The position numbers and the translations under genes are program-made. A DNA stretch of 64,000 nt from Paragordius varius (taxonomy: Eukaryota > Animalia > Nematomorpha): assembly GCA_964247055.1 (NCBI GenBank), contig OZ176052.1, positions 12,276,001-12,340,000 of the forward strand. The letters run 5' to 3'. Below, in pieces: positions 5,921 through 54,871 of the stretch. A model generated the notes under the pieces. It worked only from the letters and a program-made list of their open reading frames with translations, was not told where the DNA came from and made no database searches. Within the stretch, counting starts at the first letter, position 1; each line of letters begins with the position of its first letter.

Positions 5921-6039
5921 TATATAGACCAAAAAAACTATTATAGTTAAATTTGTTTTTTAAGTGTGAGACATTGTTTATTAATAAGGAATGGAAAATT
6001 GTTTTTAAAAATATGTTTTTTTTATAAAATATTTAAAAC

Positions 6040-6814
6040 CTTTGCCATTTATATGAGATTTGAGTTTAGATAAAGCATTAATAATTTGCTCAAAATCTGT
6101 GGGATACTGCTTGTTGATCGATTTCATTTCAAAAATATATGGGCGATTCCATTCAAAACTGTTTAATAATAATTTTTTCAAACTTGAAATACATATCATC
6201 TTCTCCCAAGAAATCCAAATATTGAGCATAACGTTCACAAGCTTTCGGCCTTTTCATCATAAGGGCAAAAAAGTTGTCGCGTGTTAAAGTGTTTTTACAA
6301 AACATAATGGTTTTGAGTAAAACATCGCACTCATTAATCTTAAGAGAAGCGTCCAGCAGTTGAGCCTTATCCTTAAGAGATTTTATTGAATCTAAAGTCT
6401 TAGGGGCACCTTTATTAATTAACGAAGTAAATGTATTTTGATTGTGATGCAATATACACTCGTTGATAAAGTTTATGTAAGGTTGATCGATAATCTATAT
6501 TAATAAAATTACGATACCTCATTATCAGTCGATTTATTAAAAGATATATTTGGATTTGATAATGATAAATTCGGAAAAGATTCAGTTATAACTTTAAAAC
6601 GGGATTTAAGCGACGCGTTTTTGGGAGTGAAAAAAGTTGGATTACAATTTTTAATTGATTGATTTTTGAATGATAATATAGATTTGTCTCTTTGGATAGG
6701 GGTATCATATTTATATTCAGTAACAGCCTTATATTAAAATAAATATACCTCTTCATCTCCAAATAAATTTGAACTAATGTTAGACGCTCCCCAAAAATCG
6801 TCTGCATTTTCCAT
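6040..6814 (-). CDS. VIPAS39: VIPAS39/spe-39-like protein (CHEVI/VPS33B partner), 5' exons
   Basis: ATG at 6814. Introns 6748-6728 (21 nt), 6517-6495 (23 nt) and 6183-6159 (25 nt) splice in frame. N-terminus MENADDFWGASNISSNLFGDEE resembles VIPAS39 EEEYWNSSKFKAFTFDDE. KGAPKTLDSIKSLKDKAQLLDASLKINECDVLLKTIMFCKNTL resembles [43 protein letters not shown]. The 3' end is uncertain. Confidence 0.75.
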
Positions 6815-6979
6815 GTGATTAAAAAAAATAATTAAATTTCCAAAAATTTATTTAAAAGTGACATAATGAATAATATTAATATAAATGTAATTAAATAATC
6901 AAAATCCTAATAAAAAAATTTTTGAACTTTTTCCTTATAGATCTGTATATACCTAGTGGTGTATTTATTCTCTTCCTAA

Positions 6980-7319
6980 ATGGTAAAAATATGTTTTTAA
7001 AATATAGACTAAAGGAACTTCAAGTTTTGGTAAGAAACACGTTAAAACTCATACACTTTGCCGTAGATGCGGCAAAAGAGCTTATCACGTTCAAAAAAGA
7101 AGGTGTGCGTCATGCGCCTATCCACAAAAGAAAATTCGATCATGTAAATTTTTAATTATCTTTAGATAACTGGTCAGAAAAGGCGAAAAGAAGGAGAACG
7201 ACTGGAACAGGAAGAATGCGTTATTTAAAAGTTGTTCGCAGGAAATTTAGGTTTTCAATATATTAATTTTTAGAAATGGATTTCGTGAAGGAACAGTTGC
7301 AAAACCCAAAAGAAAATGA
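6980..7319 (+). CDS. RPL37: 60S ribosomal protein L37 (eL37), 89 aa, 4 exons
   Basis: Exons 6980-6982, 7008-7143, 7166-7250, 7274-7319 with introns of 25, 22 and 23 nt. Spliced product [40 protein letters not shown]...[22 protein letters not shown]...GFREGT is unmistakably eL37 with its C4 zinc finger. Confidence 0.98.
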
Positions 7320-7332
7320 TTTATTAAATAAA

Positions 7333-7775
7333 TTAATCATTTAAATCATTTTGAATGAGATTATAAATTTTTTCAATATCATTTTTAAATTCATTAATAT
7401 CTTTTTCCAGAGTGGATATGTTTTCTAATATTTCGAACAATTTTTGCACCTTGGTTTGGATTATCTTTCCTGTTGATTCATACAATTTTAAAAAATGTTC
7501 ATCAATGGTTTTTATAGTTTTTGTATTCTATGATAGTTATTATAATTTACAAAGTCTTGTAGATTTTTCTTAAAATCTTCCACCGAATCTGAATCCTTTT
7601 TGCGTTTTAAGTTTATGTTGTTTACAAAATGCTGAGCTGATTTTGCAATTATATCCTTTGAATTTGTGTTCCCTTTACTGTTTGATGTATCTACCATTTT
7701 TTCTTCATCGGCAAAACTATATTTAAATATATGTAACTTTTCAAGATCAAGCATGCTCGCTTCGTTTTGGTCCAT
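7333..7775 (-). CDS. SYCE2: SYCE2-like synaptonemal complex central element protein (about 132 aa)
   Basis: Exons 7775-7738, 7716-7551, 7527-7333 with introns of 21 and 23 nt (the first is in frame and stopless, so optional). DIIAKSAQHFVNNINLKRKKD...FKKNL...YESTGKIIQTKVQKLFEILENISTLEKDI aligns without gaps to remembered human SYCE2 DILQKRAQELIENINKSRQKD...FRNSL...YNDHNKIIQEKLQEFTQKMAKISHLETEL. Confidence 0.78.
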
Positions 7776-24930: not shown

Positions 24931-27649
24931 CAGGGGTGGCCAACGAGGTGACCGCGACAACTCAAAAAGTGACCGCCTGAAAATATTTTTTTTAAAAAAT
25001 TTTATTGATTTTTTTCGGATAGTTGGCTACTTCTGAGCGAATTTAAATTTAAAATACAAAAAAATACGGTTTAAATTAAAAAAAAACGTCTAAGAAAAGG
25101 GTGTAAAAAAATTATTTTATTAATTATAATTCATATGTTTTGGAGCATTTGCATTAAGACTTAAAATCAGTCATTGCCCTTGAATATATCAAAACTTTGA
25201 GCAAAGCTTATTCATAAATCAGCATAATCGTGAAGTTAGATTTGATTTGATACACCAAAAGTAGGTTTTTAAAACTTATATTTTAGAATGAGCCAAAAAA
25301 AGTTGTACAGATACAAGAAAGATTGGGAGCATGAATACTTTTTTATTATGATAAATGAAACATCACCTGTCTAATATGCAATAGTACTGTAGTTGCTTTG
25401 CCCAAAAAGTCAAATATTGAAAGACATTATAGATCTCTGCATCCACATTACTCCAAAAACTACCCCTTACAAACTCAAAAACGCAACATTAAAGTAAAGG
25501 AATTAAAAGAACAATTATCCGCCTCACAAAATAGCATACTTAAATACAACAAAGACTATAAAAATGCTACGATTGCTTCATTCTAGGTAGCGGAAATACT
25601 GATTCGGAACAATAAGCCATTCCAAGATGGTGAAATATTTAAAGAAGCCTTTATTAGCGCTTGTGATATTTTATTTGAAAATTTTGATAACAAAAATAAT
25701 ATTATGACAGCTATTAAAAGCATAAGCTTATCGAGAAATACCGTTATGCGCAGGGCTGAAGCTATTAGTAATAATCTTGATAAAATTTTACATGAAAATA
25801 TTAATAACTGTATTTTTTTTCCTTGCAACTCGATGAGTCCACCGATTATGTTGGAATCGCCCAATTATGCATTTTTATTCGTATGATATTTAGTGATTTA
25901 TCTGCAAAGGAGGAATTATTAACTATAATACCTCTCCACGAACGAACCAGAGGGCAGGATATTTTTGATTCTTTTTATAAATTTATCACAGATACGAAAC
26001 TTCCCATCGTAAAACTCGCATCTATAACTACTGATGGAGCTCCAGCTATGATTGGCGTTAACAACGGCTTTATCGCTTTATGTAAAAATCACAGTGCATT
26101 TCCCAAGTTCATTGATTACCATTGTATAATCCATAATCAAGTTTTATGTTCAAAAGTTTTAAAATACCATCATGTAATGAACCCCTGTTTTAAAATTGTT
26201 AACGCCATTCGAACAAAAAGCTTGTCCCGCCGCCAATTTCGAATTTTGTTAAATGAGTGCGGCGTGGAATATGGAGAACTTTTATTACATACTGATGTAA
26301 GGTGGTTGAGTCGTGCCGCATTTTTAATTAGATTTAGGCAACTTTTACCACAAATAGAAATTTTTTTAGAGAATTCTAAATTTTCATACCCTGAATTGAA
26401 AGATCAAGATTGGCTGCTTGATCTTGCATTTTTATGCGATATCACGGAAAAATTGCATAAATTAAACATCCAATTACAAGGAAAAGATAAAACAATAATG
26501 GATATGATGGGTGCTTTAAAATCTTTTAAGGAAACACTAACAGTAGTAGAAACACAATTAAAAAACCGAGATTTAAAACATTTTTTAATCTGGCAGCGGT
26601 GTCTGAAAAAATAGAGAATCTCTCTTTTGAAAAATATGCAGATGATATTGGTCTGCTTATTAATGATTTTGAAAAACGATTTTCATCTATAAATAAACTT
26701 GAAGACATCGCTATTTTTTTATCATGCCCATTTAATAATAATAATAATGTTGAATATATTGCTCAAAAACTCAGCCACTTTCTTGGTGTACCAAATTTAG
26801 CAGAGTTGGAAGAGGAATTAATAAATGTTAAATGCGATATCCATCTAAAATCATTAGGATCAGATATATATAAATTTATAAATAAAGATAAATACCCCCA
26901 TATTTGGAAAACCGCTGCATTATTCAATTCTTTTTTTAGATCCACATATTTATGTGAATCGGCTTTTTCAATTATGAATGCTATCAAAACTAAACAGAGG
27001 TCACAATTAACTAATAAACATTTAGAATCATGTTTGAGAATTGCTTTGACTTCATTTGAACCTAATTTAGATAAACTTTCTGAATTTTTTCGCAGTCGGG
27101 CGTTTTAAATATTTTTTTCTTTATTAAATATGGATGTTTATCGAGTTGTATTTTCGCTTAGGAAAAAGCCGATTTACTAAAAAATATGTGGATAGAATTA
27201 AAACTGATACAATTTTAATGTACTCTTATTTATGTTCAAATTATGGTTCTAAATTGGAATGCTATTTTTTATTTCTTTTATTTTTTGTATCATAATGTAT
27301 TCTCCCCTGTAATTTCAAATGCATTGTTTAAATTTTTATATTGTAAAATTTCATATAATAGAAATTTAATAAATAAATATTTTGAAGTGTTTTATGTTGG
27401 TTAAAAAATTAAGGTAGTTAATAACCCGTTGTCTTTTAATTAAAATTATTTTTGTATTTGGTTGATAGATAAAAAAATTACAATTTTAAAATGGTTTAAA
27501 CAAGTCACTCTAATCTGTAAAGCAGGTATATACATCATTTAAAGTGTTGATTGAGTTTTTTTGATAAATATTTCTGGGTGACCGCGAACTCTTTTTTTAA
27601 CAAAAAAGCCAAAAAAAAGCTCGCGACAAAAAAAGTGTGGCCACCCCTG
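24931..27649 (+). mobile_element. hAT Buster-type transposon, 2719 bp, present in unit A only
   Basis: TIR CAGGGGTGGCCA / TGGCCACCCCTG with a perfect TSD GCCTAGAC (24923-24930 and 27650-27657). The empty site with a single GCCTAGAC is at 40710-40717. Confidence 0.97.
25288..27108 (+). pseudogene. Buster/GTF2IRD2-like hAT transposase, disrupted
   Basis: BED finger (TCLIC...IERHY...H), LDESTD, SITTDGAPAM, HCIIH, VRWLSR and STYLCESAFS. It has three frameshifts (about 25370, 25820, 26600) and one in-frame TAG (25584-25586). Confidence 0.93.
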
Positions 27650-28248: not shown

Positions 28249-31048
28249 ATGTTTATAATTTGCAAAACTTGTCAAAAACCCTATGATCAATGTAGTACTT
28301 GCTTAGTGCCATTTATGAATGAAGAAAATTCAAATTTCCAAACTTTCAATTTATCCCCAGAAAATGTTTCATCCCCTTTTCAACTGAAAACAATGAGTAC
28401 ATTTCATCCACCTTACACAACCGCCACCAATTCATCTCCAACTAACAATTATCCAGATGTTATTAATACAATTAACAATGGATCACCTAAAACGATGGTA
28501 GACACCAAAGTTCACATGGTGAATTATTTAGATTCTAAAACTGGCCTTACAAACGTCACTCCGGTATGTAAATCCTTTTCGTTGCAAAAATAAGGGATTT
28601 ATATTTCAAACGCGTAATTAAATAATATGTTAATGGGTAATATAGAAAACGATTTTCTCTGTCTTAAATATTATGGTCGGCTTTTTATGGTAAAGTTTTA
28701 TTAAAAGCAATTTTGTAGTAGTATTGTTTGTCAATATTAAACAGACCACAATAACAAATATTGGCTCACTAACTTCAATGATAAATTTTAAAATAATCCA
28801 TAATTTTAGGTATTAAATAAAATATTGGTGCATTTATTCACATATTTATTCGTAGGCTCAATAGTTTTAGCAATAGACATTTAAATAGAGATGCTCTACA
28901 AATAACTGTAAAATAAATGAACAGATTTTATTTCGTGCTTCGATAAAAAAATCCTTCAAAAATTTTAGTAGCTTCTTTAAGCATTTATCAAATACTAAGA
29001 ATCGTTGAAACTTACACGGCTAAAATTACAGAATGTAAACCGTCATTGTTTTTTTATTCAATCATATTTATATCAAAGTTTTTTAGAAAATTTACGTATG
29101 ATTTATGGGGTTAGGGTTGATAACCAAACCATCAAAAAAACAAAATTATATCCGTAAAACTACCCTAATGCTAAGAAGAAAAATAATTGGTAGAGAGAAT
29201 CCATATAATTATATACCGCTTTAATAAAGGAAACAAGAAGCAAAAATGATTTGTTAGCCGGAACGATTTAGTTATCGATTCCGCAACCCTATAAATCATA
29301 CAACGTATCTGCTAACATAAGCCCAAATTTTTAAATTTTGACGATTTACATATTCGCATTTAGCTAATACTACTAATATTACTTACCAGATACAATCGCC
29401 AATTACTTCAAATACTGCCTTTAACGAAATAATAAATGAAAGCAATTTAGATACAAAGTTATTGTCGAATACTCCAGAAATCAGTAAGTTGCAACAAGCA
29501 TTTCCCTTTCTTTCTATACAGACATTACTCGGTATGTGGCTTGATAATTATGTACAAGGTGGTAGTAATGAATCAACAAATAATTTAGCCAATAAATATC
29601 CGTACGAAAACGGAAATGGAGATGAAGAATACATAGAGAAACAAAAGGAGGAGAAACCGTCAATTATGTATAAACCGAATGACAGTTGGACAATCTACAG
29701 ACCTAGTCCATTTGAGCCTTGGCAACAGACAAAATCTGGCCCATGTATATTACAAGGAACCGCCATATCCACACAAAATAGAAAAAGTAAATTAACGTCG
29801 CTTAATTTTGAAGAGGTTTTACGCCAAGAAGCCCAAATTTGCCAACAGCTAGCGGAATATTCTCAACAAGTTTCGCAAAACTTGCAATCCATATATGAGA
29901 CATTTAATTATGAACGGTGTAGAGAGCGCAATATTGAAAAACAAATCGCCAAGAGATTGCTGAAAAAACATACAGGACTAAATGTGGATTCCCTCTCTGA
30001 TCTCACTTCAAAACCCAAAAATAAAAGTTACATAATATATACAAATATATCATTTTGTAGAAATTGTTTTCCCTTACGAAACATGAATGATAGATAAATC
30101 TTAGTGATACTTAAACTATTTTTTTGAAAGTTCGTTATTTTAAGGTAGTTATATGGGGTGAAGGTGAAATTTATTATGACTCTTACTATTTTGAAAAATT
30201 ATGATATGAATGGATAAAAGTAATAATTTATAATGATGGTTATTATTGATGATAACCGTTTAAAAATAAATTTTGTTTCCTTTAAAGAACAAAGGCCATC
30301 TAAGACCGCTGATGCCGATAAACCCAAGAATGGAAGTAAAAAAAGGGAGAAAAACGTTTCCAAAGAAGAAAAACCCAAAGTCTATGCAACCAGTAGTGAA
30401 TCCTCTTCCACCCCCTATCAAAATTGTAAGAAGGGAATTAACAAGCTTTTAACGGTTGAAAGTGAGTGTGATTTTACAGATTCATCTACATTAACACATA
30501 CCCTACCGCCACCTCTTCCCCCTCGTCAAGGTTCATTAACAAGTAAACCGCCTACATCCGCCACACCAATTAATACAACACCGCCTTTCCTTCTACCTCG
30601 TCAAGGTTTGATGATGTTTAGACCACCGCTGTCTCAGCCGAGATTTAGAGCTCCCGCCTTTTACCCATCTACTGGTCTTCAAAATCCACCACCGCCTTCA
30701 AGACCGTTGAAACCACCAATGCCGCTACCACCAAATTTTGCACAAGGGCCGTCCGCATACATTAATAACCAATTTGGGGTTCCCGCTTTTTCTCCATCTA
30801 GTAATTTTCAAAAACCACCACCGCCCCCAAGACCTTTGAAACCGCCTATGCCGCTACCATGAAACTTTGCTCCGCCGCCCTCAAACATCAATAACCCAGG
30901 ATTCGCTCAAGTCTTACCGCGTAACCGTTCACCCACCCCGAATGCAGAAACTCAAATAAATAACGAGACAAATTGTTGGAATTGTTGCAGTGCAGAACCA
31001 ACCTCAGTACCGAAAAATAGAAATAATGGCTTTGTCCCTGCCAAATAA
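28249..31048 (+). pseudogene. Orphan proline-rich protein, paralogue A (premature stop)
   Basis: Exons 28249-28563, 29390-30026 and 30288-31048 splice in phase (0 and 1). CGA to TGA at 30860-30862 truncates about 60 C-terminal codons relative to B; the truncated product could still be expressed. Confidence 0.7.
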
Positions 31049-31225
31049 ATAGGCATGGGCAAGGGAAATATTAAAAAAATAATATGGTATAACCCATTAG
31101 CTATTAATTATAAAATTATATATAAAAACTAATATAATGATTATATTGCTATGCGCAAATTAATAAATGCAAAATAAAAATAACGAAATAATAATATTTA
31201 TATGAATGAGTTAAATTAATTCTAT

Positions 31226-32449
31226 CACTGTGTGCAAAAATATTTTTAACGAAAATTTTTCTTGAGATAGCTTATGACCAGCGTATTCATTTGCCGCAAA
31301 AATTTTTATTTGTTGACAACCGAGTTTTTGAAATATTGAGAGAAAATCGAAATCGGGCAAAAAGTGAAAATTAAGGATAATTAAGGATAATTCAAAAAAT
31401 AATGATAAAATCTGAAATATTATCGTTTATTATCGTTTTAGGAGATATTTCCAATATATAAATAGCCTAAAATCCTATAATTATGGTTTCTATAAAATTT
31501 CCGGTCAAAAGATGGCGTTTTTCTTTTATCACACCTAAAAGACAAAAAAAATTCAATGAAACCATATTAAAATAATTAAGTTAATTATTACTACCTATGA
31601 TTTACTATTAAAATCTTAACATTCATATTTTATTCAGTAAAATAAACTTCTAAATCAAAATAAAACCAAAAATATTGTTTTTTATTTTTACATTTTTTTG
31701 TCATCTGGTTTATGAGTATATAAAAATTTATACTGTTTTATTTTTTTTATATAATTACGAATTTTTATGTATATAATTTATGCAAAACAGAAGTTAAAAG
31801 TAGTGGAATAACAACCAACAATCCTTACAATTTCCTGTAACAATTCTGTTTTATGACAAATTAATATTTGTATTGGGATTTGTACGGATTGTTGGTTGTA
31901 TTCCACTAATTTTCAATCAATAAATTATATACATAATATTTTCCACTCATGTTAGAATCCAAAATATAACAGTATAAACTTTTTATACACTCATAAATCA
32001 GATGACAAAAAAATGCAAAAATAAAAAACAATATTTTTGGTTTTATTTTGTTATTATAGAAGTTTATCTTCCTGAATAAAGTATGAATGTTAAGACTTTA
32101 ATAGTGAGTTTAGGTAGTAAATAATTAAAAAAAAATATTTTAATATAGTTTTGTTATTTTTTTTGTCTTACAAGTGTGATAAAAGAAAAACGCCATCTTT
32201 TGACCTGAAATTTTATAGAAACCCTAACTATATGATTTTAGACTATTTATATATTGAAAATATCTCCTAAAATTATAATAAACGATAATATTTGAGATTT
32301 TATCATTATTTTTTGAATTATCCTTAATTATCCTTAATTTTCACTTTTTGCCCGATTTCAATTTTCTCTCAATATTTTAAAAACTAGGTTGTCAACAAAT
32401 AAAAATTTTTGCGGCAAATTAAAATGACCCTCTTTTTTTGCACACAGTG
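31226..32449. mobile_element. 1.2-kb foldback/MITE with CACTG termini and a 3-bp TSD (CACTA/EnSpm-like)
   Basis: TAT|CACTGTGTGCAAAAA ... TTTTTGCACACAGTG|TAT. Almost the whole interior is an inverted repeat centred near 31850-31870. Confidence 0.85.
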
Positions 32450-41324: not shown

Positions 41325-44174
41325 ATGAGTTTTAAAATTTGTGAAACTTGCCAAAAACCCTATGATCAATGTAGTACATGCTTAGTACCATTTATGTTGG
41401 ATGAAAAAAATTCAAATTTCCAAACTTTCAATTTATCCCCAGAAAATGTTTCATCCCCCTTTCAACAGAATACAATGAGTACATTTCATCCACCCCTCTC
41501 CACCGCCACCAATTCATCTCCAACTAACAAGTATCAAGATACAAGTAATACAATTAAGAATGGATCACCTAAAACGATTCCAGACACCAAAGCTCACATG
41601 TTGAACTATTTAGATTCTAAAACTGGTCTATTTACAAACGTCACTCCGGTATGTAAATCCTTTTCGTTGCAAAAATAATTGGGGACTTATATTTCAAACG
41701 AGTAATTAAATAATATGTAAATGGGTAACATAGAAAACGATTTTCTCTATCCTAAAAATTATCGTCGGTTTTTGATGGTAAAGTTTTATTAAAAGCAATT
41801 TTGTAGTAGTATTGTTTGTCGATTTAAACAGACCACACTGGCAAATATTGGCTCACTAACTTCAATGATAAATTTTTAATTTATTGATCCATAATTTTAG
41901 ATTGCAAATAAAATATTGGTGCATTTATTTGCATATTTATTGATGAGCTTAATAGTTTCAGTTGACATTTATAATAAAGACACTCTACAAACAGCTGTAA
42001 AAAAATTAACAGATTTTATTTCTTACTTCGAAAAAAAATCCTTTAAAAATTGCAGTAGTTTCTATAAGCATTATAAAATATTAAAACCGCATCCAGGAGT
42101 CGTTGAAACTTACACAGCTAAAATTACAGAACGGAAACCGTCATAAATGTTTTTTATTCAAAAATATTTATATAAAAGTTTTGTAGAAACTTGGGCTATG
42201 TTTACATTAACGTATGATTTATGGGGTTAGAGTTGCAAACCTTTAAAAAAAATTAAAATATCCGTAAAACTACCCTAATACTAACAAGATTAAAAATTGC
42301 TAGAGAGAATCCATATACTTATAATACCGCTTTAATAAAGGAAACAAGAAGCAAAAATGATTTGTTAGCCGGAACGATTTGGTTATCGATTCCGAAACCC
42401 TATAAATCATATAACGTATATGCTAACATAAGCCCAAATTTTTTATTTTAAGACATTACGCTAATACTACTAAAAATATTACTTACCAGATACAATCGCC
42501 AATTACTTCAAATACTGCCTTTAACGAAATAAGAAATGAAAGCAATACAGGGTTATTGTCGAATACTCCAGAAATCAGTAAGTTGCAACAAACATTCCCC
42601 TTTCTTTCTATACAGACATTACTCGATATGTGGCTTGATAATTATGTGCAAGATGGCAGTAATGAATCAACAATTAATTCACCCAATAAATATCCGTACG
42701 AATGCAGAAATGAAGATGAAGAATACATAGAGGGACAAAAGGAGGAGAAACCGCCAATTAAGTATAAACCGAATGACAGTTGGACAATCTCCAGACCTAG
42801 TCCATTTGAGCCTTGGCAACAGACAAAATCTGGCCCATGTATATTACAAGGAACCGCCATATCCACACAAAATAGAAAAAGTAAATTAACGTCGCTTAAT
42901 TTTGAAGAGGTTTTACGCCAAGAAGCCCAAATTTGCCAACAGCTAGCGGAATATTCTCAACAAGTTTCGCAAAACTTGCATTCCATATATGAGACATTTA
43001 ATTATGAACGGTGTAGAGAACGCAATATTGAAAAACAAATCGCCAAGCGGTTACTGGAAAAATATACCGGACTAAATGTGGATTCCCTCTCTGATCTCAC
43101 TTCAAAACCCAAAAATAAAAGTTACATAATATATACAGATATATCATTATTTAGAAATTGTTTTCCCTTAGGAAACAACTAAATGAATAATAGATAATTC
43201 TTAGTGAAACTTAAACTATTTAAGATAGTAGAAATGATAATTTTTAAAACATATCATTGTTGTTTCTTAAAATAGTTAGTTATATGGGTTTAAGGTAAAA
43301 TTTTAATATGCCTCTTATATTTTGAAAATAATGATATGAATGAAAAGTAATAATTATATTCAGGGTATTTGTTGATAATAATCGTTTAAAAATAATTTTT
43401 GTTTCCTTTAAAGAACGAAGGCCATCTAAGACCGCTGATGCCGTTAAACCCAAGAATGGTAGTAAAAAGCAAAGGGAGAAAAACATTTCCTCAAAAGAAG
43501 ATAAACCTAAATTCTTTGCAACTAGTAGTGAATCTTCTTCCACCCCCTATCAAAATTGTAAGAAGGGAATGAACAAGCTTCTAACGGTTGAAAGTGAGAG
43601 TGATTTTACAGATTCATCTACTTTAACACATAACCCACCGCCACCACTTCCCCCTCGTCAAGGTTCAATGATAAGTAAACCGTCTACTTCCACCACACCA
43701 ATTAATACAACACCGCCTTTCCTTCCACCCCGTCAAAGTTTAATGTTTAGACCGCCGTTGTCTCAGCCGAGATTTAGAGCTCCCGCCTTTTCCCCATCTA
43801 CTGGTCTTCAAAATCCGCCACCGCCTCCAAGACCGTTGAAACCACCAATGCCGCTACCACCAAATTTTGCACAAGGGCCGTCCGCATACATTAATAACCA
43901 ATTTGGGGTTCCCGCTTTTTCTCCATCTAGTAATTTTCAAAAACCACCACCGCCCCCAAGACCTTTGAAACCGCCTATGCCGCTACCACGAAACTTTGCT
44001 CCGCCGCCCTCAAACATCAATAACCCAAGATTCGCTCAAGTCTTACCGCGTAACCGTTCACCCACCCCGAATGCAGAAACTCAAATAAATAACGAGACAA
44101 ATTGTTGGAATTGTTGCAGTGCAGAACCAACCTCAGTACCGAAAAATAGTAATAATGGCTTCCCTGCCAAATAA
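41325..44174 (+). CDS. Orphan proline-rich protein, paralogue B, apparently intact (about 571 aa, 3 exons)
   Basis: Exons 41325-41648, 42490-43120 and 43414-44174 give one open frame, with GT-AG junctions in matching phases; the internal junctions are conserved in A and C. Features: N-terminal CxxC-x6-CxxC, a Gln/Glu-rich helical middle, a Lys-rich linker, and PPPLPPR / PPPPRPLKPP motifs. Confidence 0.75.
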
Positions 44175-44350
44175 ATAGGCATGGGCATGGGAAATATTAA
44201 AAAAATAATATGGTATAACCCATTAGCTATTAATTATAAAATTATATATAAAAACTAATATAATGATTATATTGCTATGCACAAATTAATAAATGCAAAA
44301 TAAAAATAACGAAATAAATTATTTATATGAATGAGTTAAATTAATTCTAT

Positions 44351-45618
44351 CACTGTGTGCAAAAATATTTTTAACGAAAATTTTTCTTGAGATAGCTTAT
44401 GACCAGCGTATTCATTTGCCGCAAAAATTTTTATTTGTTGACAACCGAGTTTTTGAAATATTGAGAGAAAATCGAAATCGGGCAAAAAGTGAAAATTAAG
44501 GATAATTAAGGATAATTCAAAAAATAATGATAAAATCTGAAATATTATCGTTTATTATCGTTTTAGGAGACATTTCCAATATATAAATAGCCTAAAATCC
44601 TATAATTATGGTTTCTATAAAATTTCAGGTCAAAAGATGGCGTTTTTCTTTTATCACACCTAAAAGACAAAAAAAATTCAATGAAACCATATTAAAATAA
44701 TTAAGTTAATTATTACTGCCTATGATTTACTATTAAAATCTTAACATTTATATTTTATTCAGTAAAATAAAATTCTAAATTAAACTAAAACCAAAAATAT
44801 TGTTTTTTATTTTTGCATTTTTTTGTCATCTGGTTTATGAGTATATAAAAATTTATACTGTTTTATTTTTTTATATAATTACGAATTTTTATGTATATAA
44901 TTTATGCAAAACAGAAGTTAAAAGTAGTGGAATAACAACCAACAATCCTTACAATTTCCTGTAACAACTCTGTTTTATGACAAATTAATATTTGTATTGG
45001 GATTTGTACGGATTGTTGGTTGTATTCCACTGATTTTCAATCCTATTTAATAAATTATATACATAATAATTCTCACTCATGTAAGAATCCAAAATAAAAC
45101 AGTGTAAATTTTTTATACACTCATAAACCAGATGACAAAAAAATGCAAAAATAAAAAACAATATTTTTGGTTTTATTTTGTTATAGAAATTTATCTTCCT
45201 GAATAAAGTATGAATGTTAAGACTTTAATAGTGAGTTTAGGTCGTAAATAATTAAAAAAAATATTCTAATATAGTTTTATTAATTTTTTTTGTCTTTTAA
45301 GTGTGATAAAAGAAAAACGCCATCTTTTGACCTGAAATTTTATAGAAACCCTAACTATATGATTTTAGGCTATTTATATATTGAAAATATCTCCTAAAAT
45401 TATAATAAACAATAATATTTAAGATTTTATCATTATTTTTTGAATTATCCTTAATTATCCTTTTTTCACTTTTGGCGCGATTTCGATTTCTCAATATTTT
45501 AAATACTAGGTTGTCAACAAATAAAAAATTTTGCGGCAAAATATGCTGGTCATAAGCTAACTCATGAAAAAAATTTTTTTCGTTATATCAAAATGACTCT
45601 CTTTTTTTGGACACAGTG
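44351..45618. mobile_element. Unit-B copy of the CACTG foldback element
   Basis: TAT|CACTGTGTGC ... GGACACAGTG|TAT with the same long internal inverted repeat. Confidence 0.85.
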
Positions 45619-46987: not shown

Positions 46988-49930
46988 CTAACGAAAGCGG
47001 GCAGGTTTCTGACGACTTGTCGGGTACCGTCGTTCTTGTGTTTTAGCAGGGGAGTAGATTGTCTCAGATTTCTGGGTATTATCATTATTTGGACTTTCGG
47101 ATGTCGGAGTAATTGGTTCGATTTCGTCCCTTGAATTGATCGTGTTTGGTTGCGTTTCAGCGATTGTTCCATCATCCGTGGCAGTGGTTACCTCCTCCTC
47201 ATTTGTGTTGCTGGCAGTGGTCGGCTGTGGTTGTGGTTGTTGTACTATTTGGTCAGCGTGTTTCTTCACAACTTTGCCTCGGTCCTTGTCCCATACCTTG
47301 TATGAAAATAACACTGTACGGTCCGTAATCTCTCCGGCGCGCCACCCTGGACTTAATTCATTTTTATTCATTACCTGGTCATTAATGGCAAACTGCCGTC
47401 GGGGGGCCGGTGCATTTAACAATCTCGCCCTACTATTTAATTAGGTTAAGGGGGTATGGGGGGTACGCTTGAACATTAACTGGGCCGGGGTTTCTTTCGT
47501 TGTCGAGTGTATAGAATTTCTGTACGACCATAGGCTAGTGTTAAACGCTTCGTGGGTGGGTATCACATTATTTTTTATTCTTTTGTATTTATTTTTTATT
47601 GTACCTACTAACCTTTCTACCATCCCATTACTCTTAGGGTGGTAGGGGGTAACCTTAATGTGTTTCACCCCTAACGTACTTAAGGTTTACGTAAAGTACT
47701 CGTTACTGAAATACGAAGCGTTATCGCTCACGATCTCTCTTGCAAAGCCAAACCTTGCAAACGTTTCTTCTAATTTGTGGATTATTTTCGCTGCGGTTAC
47801 CTTTTTCAACATAAATCCTTCTGCCCATTTCGAGGCACTATCTATTATCAACAACCAATATAAACCGTCTACCCCGGCTATATCAATATGCAAACTCTCC
47901 CACACAGCAACATTATGATCCCACTGATACGTGGAATTCTGAGTAACATTCGGCCCACTACGTTGGCACTATTAGCATTGACTATTGTCTTTTACCAGGT
48001 CATTTTCTAATTCTGGCCAATAACACGTAAATCTGGCCATCGCTTTCATGGCTACGTTGTTGTGCTCGCTGTGTAGGTATCTCACCACATCTTTTTGGAG
48101 GGGCTTCGGAATTGCAATCCGATCATTTAAACTTAATAAGCCATATTGATATGCCAACTCGTCTTTACGGTTTACAAACTTTTCTAATGCTGGAGAAGTC
48201 CAGTCCTGGTTTTTTAACGCTTTAATTACTTTTTGTAATACTGAATCTAATGCGGTTTCTTTTCGAATTTCATCTCTGCTTAACCGCACGTTATGACAAT
48301 TAAAAAATCTCAAATATCTGGTAACCGCATAATTTACATCATAGGCAACGATCTCGTCAATCGGCCATCTTGATAAATAATCAGGTGTATTTTGAGCCCC
48401 TTAGACTTATTTCAAAGTCGTATTCATTTATCATATTAATCCACCTTAGTATTTTAGCATTATGTATCTCTTTTAAATTTCGATCTTTATTTATTAACTT
48501 TACTAAAGGTAAATGGTCAGTTAATATTATAAATTTTCTACCATATATGAAACTATGAAACTTTCGTAACGCAAATAATATTGCTTTTAATTCCTTCTCT
48601 ATAGTGGAATAGGCATACACTATTGGTAACCTTTCACTATTAACTTCATGACTTAAAATACATTCGAATCCTAAATCTGACGCATCATTTGCTATTATCA
48701 ATTTCCTATTCGGATTATATGGTGTTAAAAACACTTTTTCGCTTACAAATTCTTAGCTGCTAACCAGCTTTTCTCATGTTTCTCAGTCCAACACCATCTC
48801 GTATTTTTACTAGTTAATTCATGTAAGGAACCGACTATCATTTGTAATTTTGGTATAAAGCGTTCATGAAATGTCAAAAAACCTACAAAACTACGTAACG
48901 ACTTTTTATCTACCGGCCTTTTTAGTCCCTTAATTGCTTTGATTTTGCTTTCACACGGGCTTATACCCTTTTTTGATATTTCAAACCCTATATAGTTTAC
49001 TGATTCTGCGCCTATCCTTATTTTATCTTGTCTTAATTTAAATCCGGCCTTATCGAGACGACTTAATACGTTATTTAAATTGTTAATGTGCTCATTTTCC
49101 GTACCAGTCACTAGGACGTAATCTAAATATACCCAAGTTCCTGGACTTTCAGCCAGCACTTGTTCCATCACTCTTTGGAAGATGATAGGTGCCGTGGCCA
49201 GTCCAAACGGCATGCGTTTGTATCTAAAAAAACCTTTATGTGTTGAGATAGTTAACAATTCTTGACACTCCTCTGCCACTGGCATCTGGAGGTAAGCATC
49301 TTTTAAATCAATTTTCGTGAATGTGATATTTTCACCTATTTTCGACACCAACTCATCAAACGTGGGGATTAAGTGGGAGTCTTCTTGCAACCACTTATTA
49401 ATCGTTACCCGAAAATCACTACATATTCTTAATTCGCCATTCGGTTTAAGTACATTAACCGTAGGCGTGGCCCATGTCACAGGTGTGGTGTTAGGATCAA
49501 CCGGTTCTAAAATGCCTAACTTTTATAGCCTCGACAGCTCTTTCTACATCTTTTCTCTTAATGGAAAAGGCACCCTGCGACATGGCCATACGTTCGGGAT
49601 CGCATTCGCTGCAATGCGAATTTTTACAGGGTCCTTATAACACCCTAACTTATTTTCGAATAAATTTTTAAAATTTTCACAAATTTCATTCAATTTAAGA
49701 TAATTAACTTTAACCTGTGGCATCTCAATCTGGAATTTCGCCATCCAGTCCAGTCCACAGATTAGCGGGACCATCCCCATCGTTTTGCTTAGGACACATA
49801 TGTCCCCGACCATTTGTTTACCATTTACCTGGACCTTGACTCTTGCTGCCATCATTGGCACTGTGGTATTGTTGTACGATTTTACTGGGGGTGTCGGGCT
49901 TGGGTTTACCGATTTGCTCCGATGTGGCAA
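46988..49930 (-). pseudogene. pol: Gypsy pol (RT, RNase H, integrase), multiple frameshifts
   Basis: RT motifs KIDLKDAYLQ and RMPFGL, with YLDD mutated to YLDY. RNase H motifs NDASD and IEKELKAI. Integrase HIDIAG, SDNA and NGMVERLV. Confidence 0.93.
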
Positions 49931-50840
49931 AGTTTATTACACTGATGTCCGAACCGGTATCATAGATAAAGTCTTTTTTTAACCCGTTTATTACTAGTGT
50001 TATCAGTAAGGGAGTTAGCGCCTTATGACCCACGTTAACATCCTTCAATAATTGCCTATTGAAGTTAGGTCTTTGTCTTTTGGCCACACACATTCTCGCA
50101 AAATGCTTCAGCTTTCCGCATTTGTTGCAGGATCGTCTCCAGGCTGGACACTTGTTGGGTGGGTGTGTGTTGCCGCAATATTTACATGTGGTAGAAGGTT
50201 TTATTATTGTTTGTCGATTGGATTTATTATGTTGCACCCGATTGATATTATTATTGCTGTTACTGTATCGATTGCTATTGTTATTACTATTATTGTTATT
50301 CTGTAATCCAGCCCTAGCAGACTCATGTGCTAGTGCGAGATCTACGATTGTTTCTAGTGGGACAGGAATACCGTTTATCAAAGCATCTGGATACCTGGAA
50401 TGGATATCCATCTCTAGTTGAGGCTGTCGCAGTCCTATTACGAATGCATCACTGAGCTTCTTCAGCTCCCATCTTGACACGCTCAAGGAATTGGGTAAAC
50501 TTTCACCCTCGTTGCGTACCAGCCTATAAAATTCAAAACGACTTTGGAATTTTGATTTTGTCAGATTGAATATTTCTTTGCCTGTTTCCGTAATCTCCGC
50601 CCATGTGGCATCTTTTATTTTCTTGGGGTATAGGTGTTGGTTAATCTTTCTTACTATCATGAATCCGCCATATGGTAGTATCGTTGATTTAAGCGTTCTT
50701 TCGGTTACTGGAATATCCTTTGCCTCGAGTACGTTGCTAATATACTCGAGGTACTCTTCAAATTTATTATTATCGTTATTCTATGGCTAAATTCGCAATA
50801 CTAGTATGAGGAGCTGTGGTGTTCATTGGTTCGTCTGCCA
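49818..50840 (-). pseudogene. gag: Gypsy gag with zinc knuckles, and aspartic protease
   Basis: CKYCGNTHPPNKCPAWRRSCNKCGKLKHFARMC (CCHC) and FIYDTGSDISVI (DTG protease motif); frameshifted. Confidence 0.9.
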
Positions 50841-52897: not shown

Positions 52898-54871
52898 ATG
52901 CCTAAAACGCTTATTAAAAAACGCTCTCCACAAAAATTCCTACTTTTTGATAAAAGTTTGAAAATTCTAGGTTCTCCTACAAAGGAAACCCAGCAACACC
53001 AAGAAGAAAAATCACCAAAGAAGTCAAAATCTTTTTTCTCATGCAAATCTAATTTTTCTATATTTTTAGGTTGCTGTCAAACGAAAAAGGTAGTCAAAAA
53101 CCCGCAAGATGCAAATCAATCAAAACACCCGTCACCCAACGATGATGTTTCAGCTAAAACACAAGCAAAACTCAAGAGTGATGAAAAAGTTATATTGAAA
53201 ACTGAAGTTGAAAGTAATATTTTCAATAAATTAATTGAAACATTTTGGTTTAATCTCATCTTATATTGATCTAATAACTTATATAGATAGCGGAAATGAT
53301 AAAAATATCATTCAAAAGGGATCGAATCTACCGTCGAAGAAAAAAGTTTCAAAACTTCAAAAATTAAAAGGACTCTTTACAAGTTGTTGCAAGAAAAAGA
53401 AAAATAACTTAGAGTATGAAATCAGCGAAACACCGCTGCCCACTCCCACAAATGATCTAAATGGTAATGTATTAGAAAAGAATCCCCAGAATACAAAATT
53501 AGACTTGAACGTTGAAAAAGGCGAGACCCTGCCTTTCTCACATAGATATGAAAATGACACGATGCCCCTTCAAGCTTATTGTATAAACGAAAATATATTG
53601 CAAAACAATCAAAATACCATAGACTTGAACGCTGAAAAAAACGAGGTCCTGCCTTTGTCACACAGTTATGAAAATGGCACGCCCCCTCAGGCCTATTACA
53701 TAAATGAAAATGTATTGGAAAACGAGTACGAAAAAACGAAATTAGATTTAGACGTTGAAAAAGACGAGGCCTTGTCTTTCTATAACAGTGTTAATAAAAA
53801 GGAGGCGAATGTATATATTAATTTAGAAACAATAGATAACGCGTATCAAGCTAAGGAAAATGAATCCCAAACAATATGTGAACAATATCTTGGTGAACGT
53901 AACGAATGCGGAGATCAACCCAATTATAAAATTGTAAAAGAGAAAAAACCGATAGGTATCATCAATAAGGGGAATACATGTTATGCCAATAGCATAATAC
54001 AAGCCCTTTACTCAATGCCTGATTTCCTACATGTGATAAAATCGGAAAGCCAATTAGACACAATTTTAAAAAACATATTCAATGGTTTAAACGACCATCA
54101 AGATGTCGATGTTCCCGGTCTGTTGAAGTCCTTAAACTGTAAATTTGTTTTAATTAAATATAGATTGGAACCACAAAATAAATAAAAGTGCCATGGAAGA
54201 TTGTCATGAGGTTTTACTCAATTTAATTAGCTCCCTTTCTGAAAAGAATGATTCCGTTAAAAAATTATTTAACACCACCCTTAAATTAACAAGTACTGGA
54301 TTATTAATTTGTAGCGAAATGCTGTTATTGCGATAACGTGTCATACAAATTGGAGGAAAGTATTGGGTTAAGTCTACCGATTTGCAACTATCAATCGGTT
54401 TCCGATTGCTTAACTTCCTATTTTGAATCAGAACTATTGGAAGATTTTATTTGCCCTAAGTATTATATTTTATCTATATAAAGTTGCTCCGAAGTGGGAA
54501 CTGTCACCAGACAAACGGAATTGTTTGAAATGCCGACAATACTCATTATTCATTTACAAAGGTTTGACATCAAAGGCAAGAAAGTTAATAAATCCGTTGA
54601 AAATGATTTGGAACTCAACATCCCAGCATTGGGCTCTGTCTTTTCAACCAATTTAATTGGAATGTTGTCACACGAGGGAAGATCGTCAAATATAGGTCAT
54701 TATGTCGCGTATTGTTTACGTGATAAATGGTTTCTATTTGACGATAAAAAGGTAAAAAATAGAACAAGTAAAGAAGTGCGTAAAGTTAAGTCCTATGTGC
54801 TCTTCTATAAATATTTAGATTTTTGTGACCAATTTGCAGAAAGGAGTAGCAGTAAAGTTGGGCTTCTTTGA
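52898..54871 (+). CDS. Ubiquitin-specific protease (peptidase C19), paralogue C, apparently intact
   Basis: Cys box GIINKGNTCYANSIIQAL, MEDCHE, two CxxC finger motifs (CCYC, CPNC), LIIHLQRF, His box HEGRSSNIGHYVAY and WFLFDD. Introns 54139-54163 (25 nt), 54293-54314 (22 nt) and 54460-54483 (24 nt) restore one frame. The N-terminal exon structure near 53000-53290 is uncertain. Confidence 0.9.

Follow-up and report, generated by a model that had tools for sequence, protein, structure and literature searches.

A gordiid horsehair worm very probably has, in its nuclear genes, U2-type GT-AG spliceosomal introns of only 21-29 nt, which would be removed by a conventional major spliceosome. The case starts from a 64-kb stretch of DNA (the window hereafter; C3:12276001-12340000 in a 110.6-Mb assembly of 44 contigs, with a GC content of ca. 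30 %), for which 11 introns of 21-25 nt had been proposed in four genes: RPL37, a short VIPAS39/SPE-39-like gene, a small coiled-coil gene weakly similar to SYCE2 and a USP-type deubiquitinase gene. The first three genes form a 1.8-kb cluster at 6005-7775. All 11 segments lie where the original prediction had placed them, start with GT and end with AG, and excision restores the reading frame of the gene for ten of them (those of RPL37, USP and the VIPAS39-like gene, and the 23-nt intron of the SYCE2-like gene), the eleventh being a 21-nt segment through which the frame is open. Homology searches were run exon by exon, whereas the joined coding sequences were used to count frames and stops. The collinearity of the exons with their homologues makes it very probable, as had been proposed, that conserved animal genes of this genome are split by spliceosomal micro-introns. 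Additionally, 14 further micro-introns of 23-29 nt were found in RPL3, RPS3A, RPS8 and a BiP-like HSP70 gene (contigs C3, C4 and C5).

Gene RPL37 (protein eL37; 6980-7319, + strand, exons 6980-6982, 7008-7143, 7166-7250 and 7274-7319) consists of an ATG, the 25 nt of intron 1 (6983-7007, phase 0, immediately 3' of the ATG, i.e., after codon 1), a 136-nt exon, the 22 nt of intron 2 (7144-7165, phase 1, codon 47), an 85-nt exon, the 23 nt of intron 3 (7251-7273, phase 2, codon 75) and a 46-nt exon ending in TGA. A check of frame and stops showed that each excised segment has the form GT...AG and that their removal leaves an open reading frame (ORF) of 89 aa. Exon 2 alone matches positions 1-45 of the Pfam family L37e (PF01907) with E=2.6e-22 and 79.1 bits, over a cut-off of 27.6, and the CRRC and CASC motifs of the four-cysteine zinc ribbon were both found. 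In solved ribosome chains from the PDB, residues 2-46 of eL37 correspond to exon 2 and residues 48-74 to exon 3; since exactly one residue remains for each split codon, the junctions have no slack. The 340-nt gene is the sole DNA copy in the genome.

The positions of two of these introns coincide with those of fungal introns. Intron 1 occupies the same codon and phase as an intron in the RPL37 gene of a rust fungus (after codon 1, phase 0) and intron 2 those of an intron in the Aspergillus gene (codon 47, phase 1), with an alignment of the three sequences that is gap-free over the region of both introns. Given these identical positions, introns 1 and 2 are ancient; intron 3 has no counterpart in either of the two fungal genes examined. 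A further RPL37 candidate, P0121, was rejected, being an intronless gene on metagenome contigs. The ATG codons of RPL37 and of the VIPAS39-like gene lie head to head, only 165 nt apart (6814-6980 of the window), in a very compact packing. On the other side, the stop codons of RPL37 and of the SYCE2-like gene are tail to tail and 13 nt apart (7319-7333), so that the 3' untranslated regions of these two genes must overlap.

Other conserved genes show the same architecture. RPL3 (C5) contains eight GT-AG introns, of 28, 24, 24, 26, 29, 26, 26 and 24 nt, whose excision yields a 399-aa ORF without internal stops, and the first of them follows the ATG immediately, as in RPL37. RPL3 is also the sole copy found in the genome; as the only copies found, both RPL3 and RPL37 must therefore be functional. 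Micro-introns also occur side by side with longer ones. In RPS3A (C3, 4.3 Mb from the window), introns of 23 and 24 nt are interleaved with others of 128, 125 and 67 nt; in RPS8 (C4), introns of 25 and 27 nt are followed by one of 70 nt and one of ca. 142 nt; and in the BiP-like HSP70 gene (C4), two introns of 23 and 28 nt accompany one of ca. 67 nt. Taken together, 12 of the 18 introns in the models of RPL3, RPS3A and RPS8 measure at most 29 nt and the others 44-142 nt; of the latter, the two that lie at the 3' ends of RPS3A and RPS8 are uncertain. Pyrimidine tracts of the CTCTTCC or CTTTCC type occur just 5' of the ATG in RPL37 (6950-6979 of the window), RPL3 (ca. 1455-1469 of the extracted RPL3 locus), RPS3A and RPS8, and by their sequence resemble the 5' terminal oligopyrimidine (5'TOP) motif of animal ribosomal-protein genes.

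The catalytic part of a USP-type deubiquitinase (53235-54871, + strand; PF00443) is encoded in four exons, a to d (53235-54138, 54164-54292, 54315-54459 and 54484-54871), separated by introns of 25 nt (54139-54163, phase 1), 22 nt (54293-54314, phase 1) and 24 nt (54460-54483, phase 2), the last of which would introduce an in-frame TAA if retained. Exon a, with the Cys box NTCYANS, matches positions 1-39 of the Pfam UCH model with 32 bits, and exon d, with the His box and a GHYVAY motif, matches positions 141-254 with 74.3 bits, the Cys and His boxes thus being in the right order. Between them, exon c has USP46 as its sole PDB match, which is collinear, and exon b, searched alone, gave no match. 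The nearest solved structures to exon d are those of USP8, USP15, USP21 and USP2. Excision of the 24-nt intron also joins a CPNC zinc-ribbon motif. The true 5' end of this gene probably lies upstream, within an ORF at 52898-53269, which an extra intron of ca. 43 nt near 53243-53285 may join to it. The N-terminal region (53450-53800 of the window) contains ca. 2.5 copies of a repeat of ca. 40 aa (LDLNxEK...LPxSHxYEN...QAYxINEN).

The VIPAS39-like gene (6005-6814, - strand) is shorter, with a model of 247 aa in four exons (6814-6749, 6727-6518, 6494-6184 and 6158-6005). Intron 1 (6728-6748) has 21 nt, phase 0, a GC content of 0.10 and an in-frame TAA, and its backing is the open frame and its composition, because the adjoining exons are not conserved. 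Intron 2 (6495-6517; 23 nt, phase 0) links open frames of 72 and 113 codons, and the start of the exon that follows it could not be aligned to homologues. Intron 3 (6159-6183; 25 nt, phase 2) is followed by an open frame of 50 codons. Homology is confined to exon 3, exon 4 having none. Exon 3 matches the Pfam family Vps16_C weakly (E=0.07), and in an all-against-all search it matched 28 cluster representatives with 29-41 % identity. An immunoglobulin-domain protein ranks first (E=9e-8), the remaining matches having E=3e-6 or weaker; yet of ten of the representatives scanned, eight pass the Pfam cut-off for Vps16_C, five of these eight being proteins of ca. 500 aa. The top VIPAS39-like matches, P0127 and P0129, lie on short contigs. 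Judged by this homology, exon 3 appears to merit the VIPAS39-like label. Downstream of the 247-aa model, the window yielded no C-terminal half of the family.

We compared these introns with the exon structures mapped in the VIPAS39 loci of two animals, GCA_002754855.1 (L018), which we take to be a sea cucumber, and GCA_958295435.1 (L017). Intron 3 lies two codons from a phase-2 intron common to both animals, and in the same phase, whereas two further positions common to both are absent here. The gene of GCA_958295435.1 (at 501-2880 of the extracted locus) belongs to a compact animal genome, and 10 of its 13 introns measure 35-41 nt, which is near the usual lower size limit; it resembles the genes described here in its short GT-AG introns and in the position shared within two codons, and it differs from them in that its introns stay above 30 nt, outside the class of 21-29 nt. 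Since positions coincide with introns of other taxa, at least some of the micro-introns appear to be old introns that shrank, and these would have been deleted down to the smallest size tolerated by the spliceosome. Other ancestral introns have evidently been lost, as judged from the VIPAS39-like gene. The proposal that ancestral introns were shrunk rather than lost therefore stands for some introns at ancient positions, and does not extend to the two VIPAS39 positions that are missing.

In the small coiled-coil gene (7333-7775, - strand; exons 7775-7551, or 7775-7738 plus 7716-7551, and 7527-7333), the 23-nt intron at 7528-7550 (phase 0) is supported. The pieces that flank it match the same 112-residue SYCE2 chain (6r17_A), at residues 12-47 and 55-105, and the junction extrapolates to residues 49/50 of that chain without any indel. 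These matches are weak (E=0.093 and 0.0031), other coiled-coil proteins score too, the gene had no Pfam match and a protein-atlas search with the exon gave nothing informative; the resemblance to SYCE2 is accordingly a weak one.

The properties of the micro-introns were examined in a set of 23 tabulated sequences; the pair from the BiP-like HSP70 gene is additional to these and is also GT-AG. Lengths range from 21 to 29 nt, with a median of 24, and the GC content is 8-27 %, versus 35-41 % in the exons. The ends are GT-AG in all 23. The donor reads GTA in 16 and GTT in seven, and the acceptor TAG in 16, AAG in five and CAG in two. Upstream of the acceptor, there is a T at position -5 in 19 of the 23 introns and an A at position -8 in 17 (p=0.002 uncorrected, ca. 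0.03 after correction for the positions examined). We infer that this A, situated ca. 6 nt upstream of the AG, would serve as the branch point.

Several observations weigh against the interpretation of these segments as spliceosomal introns. Splicing is read here from DNA alone, the search with RPL37 exon 2 having found no transcript-derived protein of the same species, and the sample is of nine genes rather than of the whole genome. A scan of the window for short GT-AG segments of 20-29 nt that bridge open frames found no excess over control dinucleotide pairs, whether or not the candidates were filtered by the GC content of introns and exons, the controls being contaminated by slid versions of real introns. 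The branch-point assignment is based on a positional bias in 23 sequences. Intron 3 of the VIPAS39-like gene has an ambiguous donor, in that an alternative one at 6192 would lengthen the intron to 34 nt without changing the frame. Lastly, the 21-nt intron claimed at 7717-7737 (- strand) of the SYCE2-like gene is unsupported, because the frame is open through the segment: it contains no in-frame stop, the ORF continues with or without it (140 versus 133 aa), and it is intron-like only in its GT-AG ends and its GC content of 0.14.

The null result of the scan and the reading of splicing from DNA would also fit segments that are not removed from RNA at all, such as insertions arising in assembly or sequencing, pseudogene lesions, or germline-only DNA excised at the DNA level. 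Against this stand the GT-AG ends of 23 out of 23 segments, the preference for GTA and TAG and the narrow range of lengths, as well as the location of two segments at the exact codon and phase of fungal introns. Moreover, some of the genes affected encode essential ribosomal proteins and were found in no other copy, and random insertions would not spare the exon sequence so precisely. We consequently regard an origin other than splicing as highly improbable. Since frame restoration alone does not rise above chance in AT-rich DNA, the case for spliceosomal introns rests on residue-level collinearity, on the universal GT-AG ends and on the coincidence with introns of other taxa.

The micro-introns could also be real and policed by translation as in Paramecium, introns with a length divisible by three (3n introns) persisting only where an in-frame stop within them sends unspliced mRNA to nonsense-mediated decay (NMD). 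In 2008, Jaillon and colleagues reportedly described Paramecium introns of 20-34 nt in which 3n lengths were depleted and enriched in stops. The introns described here are similar in their size range and AT-richness and in that most 3n introns have an in-frame stop; in the window this applies to two of the three 3n introns, just as the original prediction had counted. In the set of 23, a stop is present in 7/8 3n introns and in 6/15 of the others (Fisher p=0.07), and when the 3n group is limited to the six introns with homology-backed junctions, in 6/6 versus 6/15 (p=0.019). However, shuffling these introns without altering their composition leaves a stop in 53-79 % of cases (ca. 0.66 expected); by this standard, a share of 7/8 is unremarkable (p=0.18) and one of 6/6 borderline (p=0.08), and GTAA donors and TAG acceptors generate stops automatically in some phases. 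For both reasons, the NMD idea is a lead and not a result. Besides, unlike in Paramecium, 3n lengths are not depleted, amounting to 8/23 versus one third expected in what is a small sample, and the stop excess is not significant versus the shuffles. The organism also differs from Paramecium in being an animal, with a standard genetic code and chromosome-scale contigs. Thus, the proposed link to NMD retains a suggestive, underpowered excess of stops and is not accompanied by 3n depletion, and policing by translation appears to us unlikely.

As to the machinery that would remove the micro-introns, genes for all five small nuclear RNAs (snRNAs) of the major spliceosome scored above the Rfam gathering thresholds, with 124 bits for U1, 178 for U2, 107 for U4, 91 for U5 and 114 for U6. 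The 5' end of U1 is canonical and carries ACTTACCTG, and the branch-site box of U2, GTAGTA, is canonical as well. These snRNAs are therefore canonical-looking, and there is no sign at their level of a specially adapted spliceosome such as the one that had been invoked for minimal substrates. The presence of U1, U2, U4, U5 and U6 is consistent with removal of introns of 21-29 nt by a conventional major spliceosome. U12 was not found in the genome search, which cannot show its absence, and an Rfam scan of the 64-kb window gave no matches. Many of the snRNA matches form clusters of genes or pseudogenes, with ca. 30 of the 46 U2 matches at C3:257000-527000 and 13 of the 17 U1 matches at C6:565000-633000.

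According to a survey of 51 animal genomes (PMC13644364, Mol Biol Evol 2026), which may or may not have included a hairworm, introns below 30 nt, the earlier lower limit for animals, occur only in myxobolid myxozoans and in Dicyema. The median intron is said there to be of 22-27 bp in the myxobolids Henneguya, Thelohanellus and Myxobolus, and Dicyema japonicum to have likewise ultra-short introns. The window might then come from one of these lineages, a dicyemid or a myxobolid myxozoan, and show the published phenomenon only; lengths of 21-29 nt, reduced GTa/AG signals, a GC content of ca. 30 % and a parasitic lifestyle all match them (PMC13644364). The mitochondrial evidence points to a different host. 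The assembly includes a mitochondrial contig of 15,693 bp (C44), and the five best matches to an ATP6 fragment from it are all gordiid hairworms (two Gordionus, Parachordodes, Chordodes and Gordius), with 53-59 % identity and E=1e-34 to 1e-29, followed by arthropods with at most 49 %. In a maximum-likelihood tree of ATP6, the query joins the five hairworms in a clade with support of 100/99 and is weakly nested among the gordiids.

Nuclear data agree with this placement in part. One HSP70 exon shares 87 % identity with bilaterian HSC70, its matches across Bilateria being at 83-87 %; such identity would fit a slowly evolving bilaterian and would be unusual in fast-evolving myxozoans or dicyemids. 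A search with RPL37, which had been suggested as a way to place the taxon, was run with exon 2 and returned five candidates, none of them from a related animal. The mitogenome also contains dozens of perfect inverted repeats with arms of up to 208 nt, several of which overlap coding ORFs, and coding palindromes are a trait described for Nematomorpha (PMC6649704). In view of the ATP6 clade and of these palindromes, the dicyemid-like host implied by the original prediction is abandoned in favor of a gordiid hairworm, and an origin in a lineage already known for such introns is hardly tenable. Just 5' of COX1 in C44 (6752-7451 of the extracted stretch) there are ca. 10 tandem units of 72 nt, each with a palindrome of ca. 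50 nt, and a 275-codon open frame in the same place, without any Pfam match, is probably this tandem palindrome array. Published hairworm genomes, from a set of four species, measure 200-300 Mb (bioRxiv 10.1101/2024.06.11.598342); the present assembly has 110.6 Mb.

What is new is the lineage, a hairworm; the kind of feature, animal introns below 30 nt, is already known. The likeness to the myxobolids and Dicyema (PMC13644364) includes GT-AG introns below 30 nt in an animal parasite, at conserved positions between conserved exons, together with a 5' signal reduced to GTa, weakly conserved A residues shortly before the AG and a canonical U2. The differences start with the lineage itself, which by the mitochondrial evidence is Nematomorpha (Ecdysozoa). 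Here, two sorts of introns coexist, micro-introns and ordinary ones measuring 44-142 nt; T is retained at positions -3 and -5 of the 3' signal, and the genome is rich in transposons and has one HSP70 with 87 % identity to bilaterian HSC70. In the survey, splicing was shown by long reads (PMC13644364), while here it is predicted from genomic sequence. A search of the literature on introns of Nematomorpha or hairworms found nothing relevant, and two hairworm genome preprints make no mention of introns.

Mobile elements are also present in the window. A repeat of at least 3.2 kb occurs in two copies, at 28316-31471 and 41398-44596, which share 90-98 % identity at a distance of 13.1 kb. Each copy contains ORFs of ca. 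200 aa without any Pfam match, and the repeat probably represents a mobile element not yet characterised. A hAT dimerisation domain is encoded by an ORF at 25823-27108, and a remnant of a long terminal repeat (LTR)-type retroelement at 46988-50660 (- strand) includes one ORF for a reverse transcriptase and another that is aspartyl-protease-like.

If the interpretation of these segments as spliceosomal introns is true, hairworms would be a third, phylogenetically distant animal case of introns below 30 nt. The broader claim is finely balanced in our judgment: horsehair worms may be the third independent animal lineage, and the first among ecdysozoans, in which introns of 21-29 nt are routinely spliced beside ordinary long ones. 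Their major spliceosome would be canonical in other respects and would use a branch A ca. 6 nt upstream of the AG. Because ordinary long introns, numerous transposons and a strongly conserved HSP70 are all retained in this genome, short and long introns could be compared within one organism, as substrates of 23 nt and of ordinary length for the same spliceosome. Genes with micro-introns would be broken up or overlooked by prediction and completeness software that presumes longer introns. One hairworm genome preprint gives a BUSCO completeness of 71.6 %. Since micro-introns would defeat standard gene finders, some of the "missing universal genes" that have been reported in Nematomorpha could be an annotation artefact.

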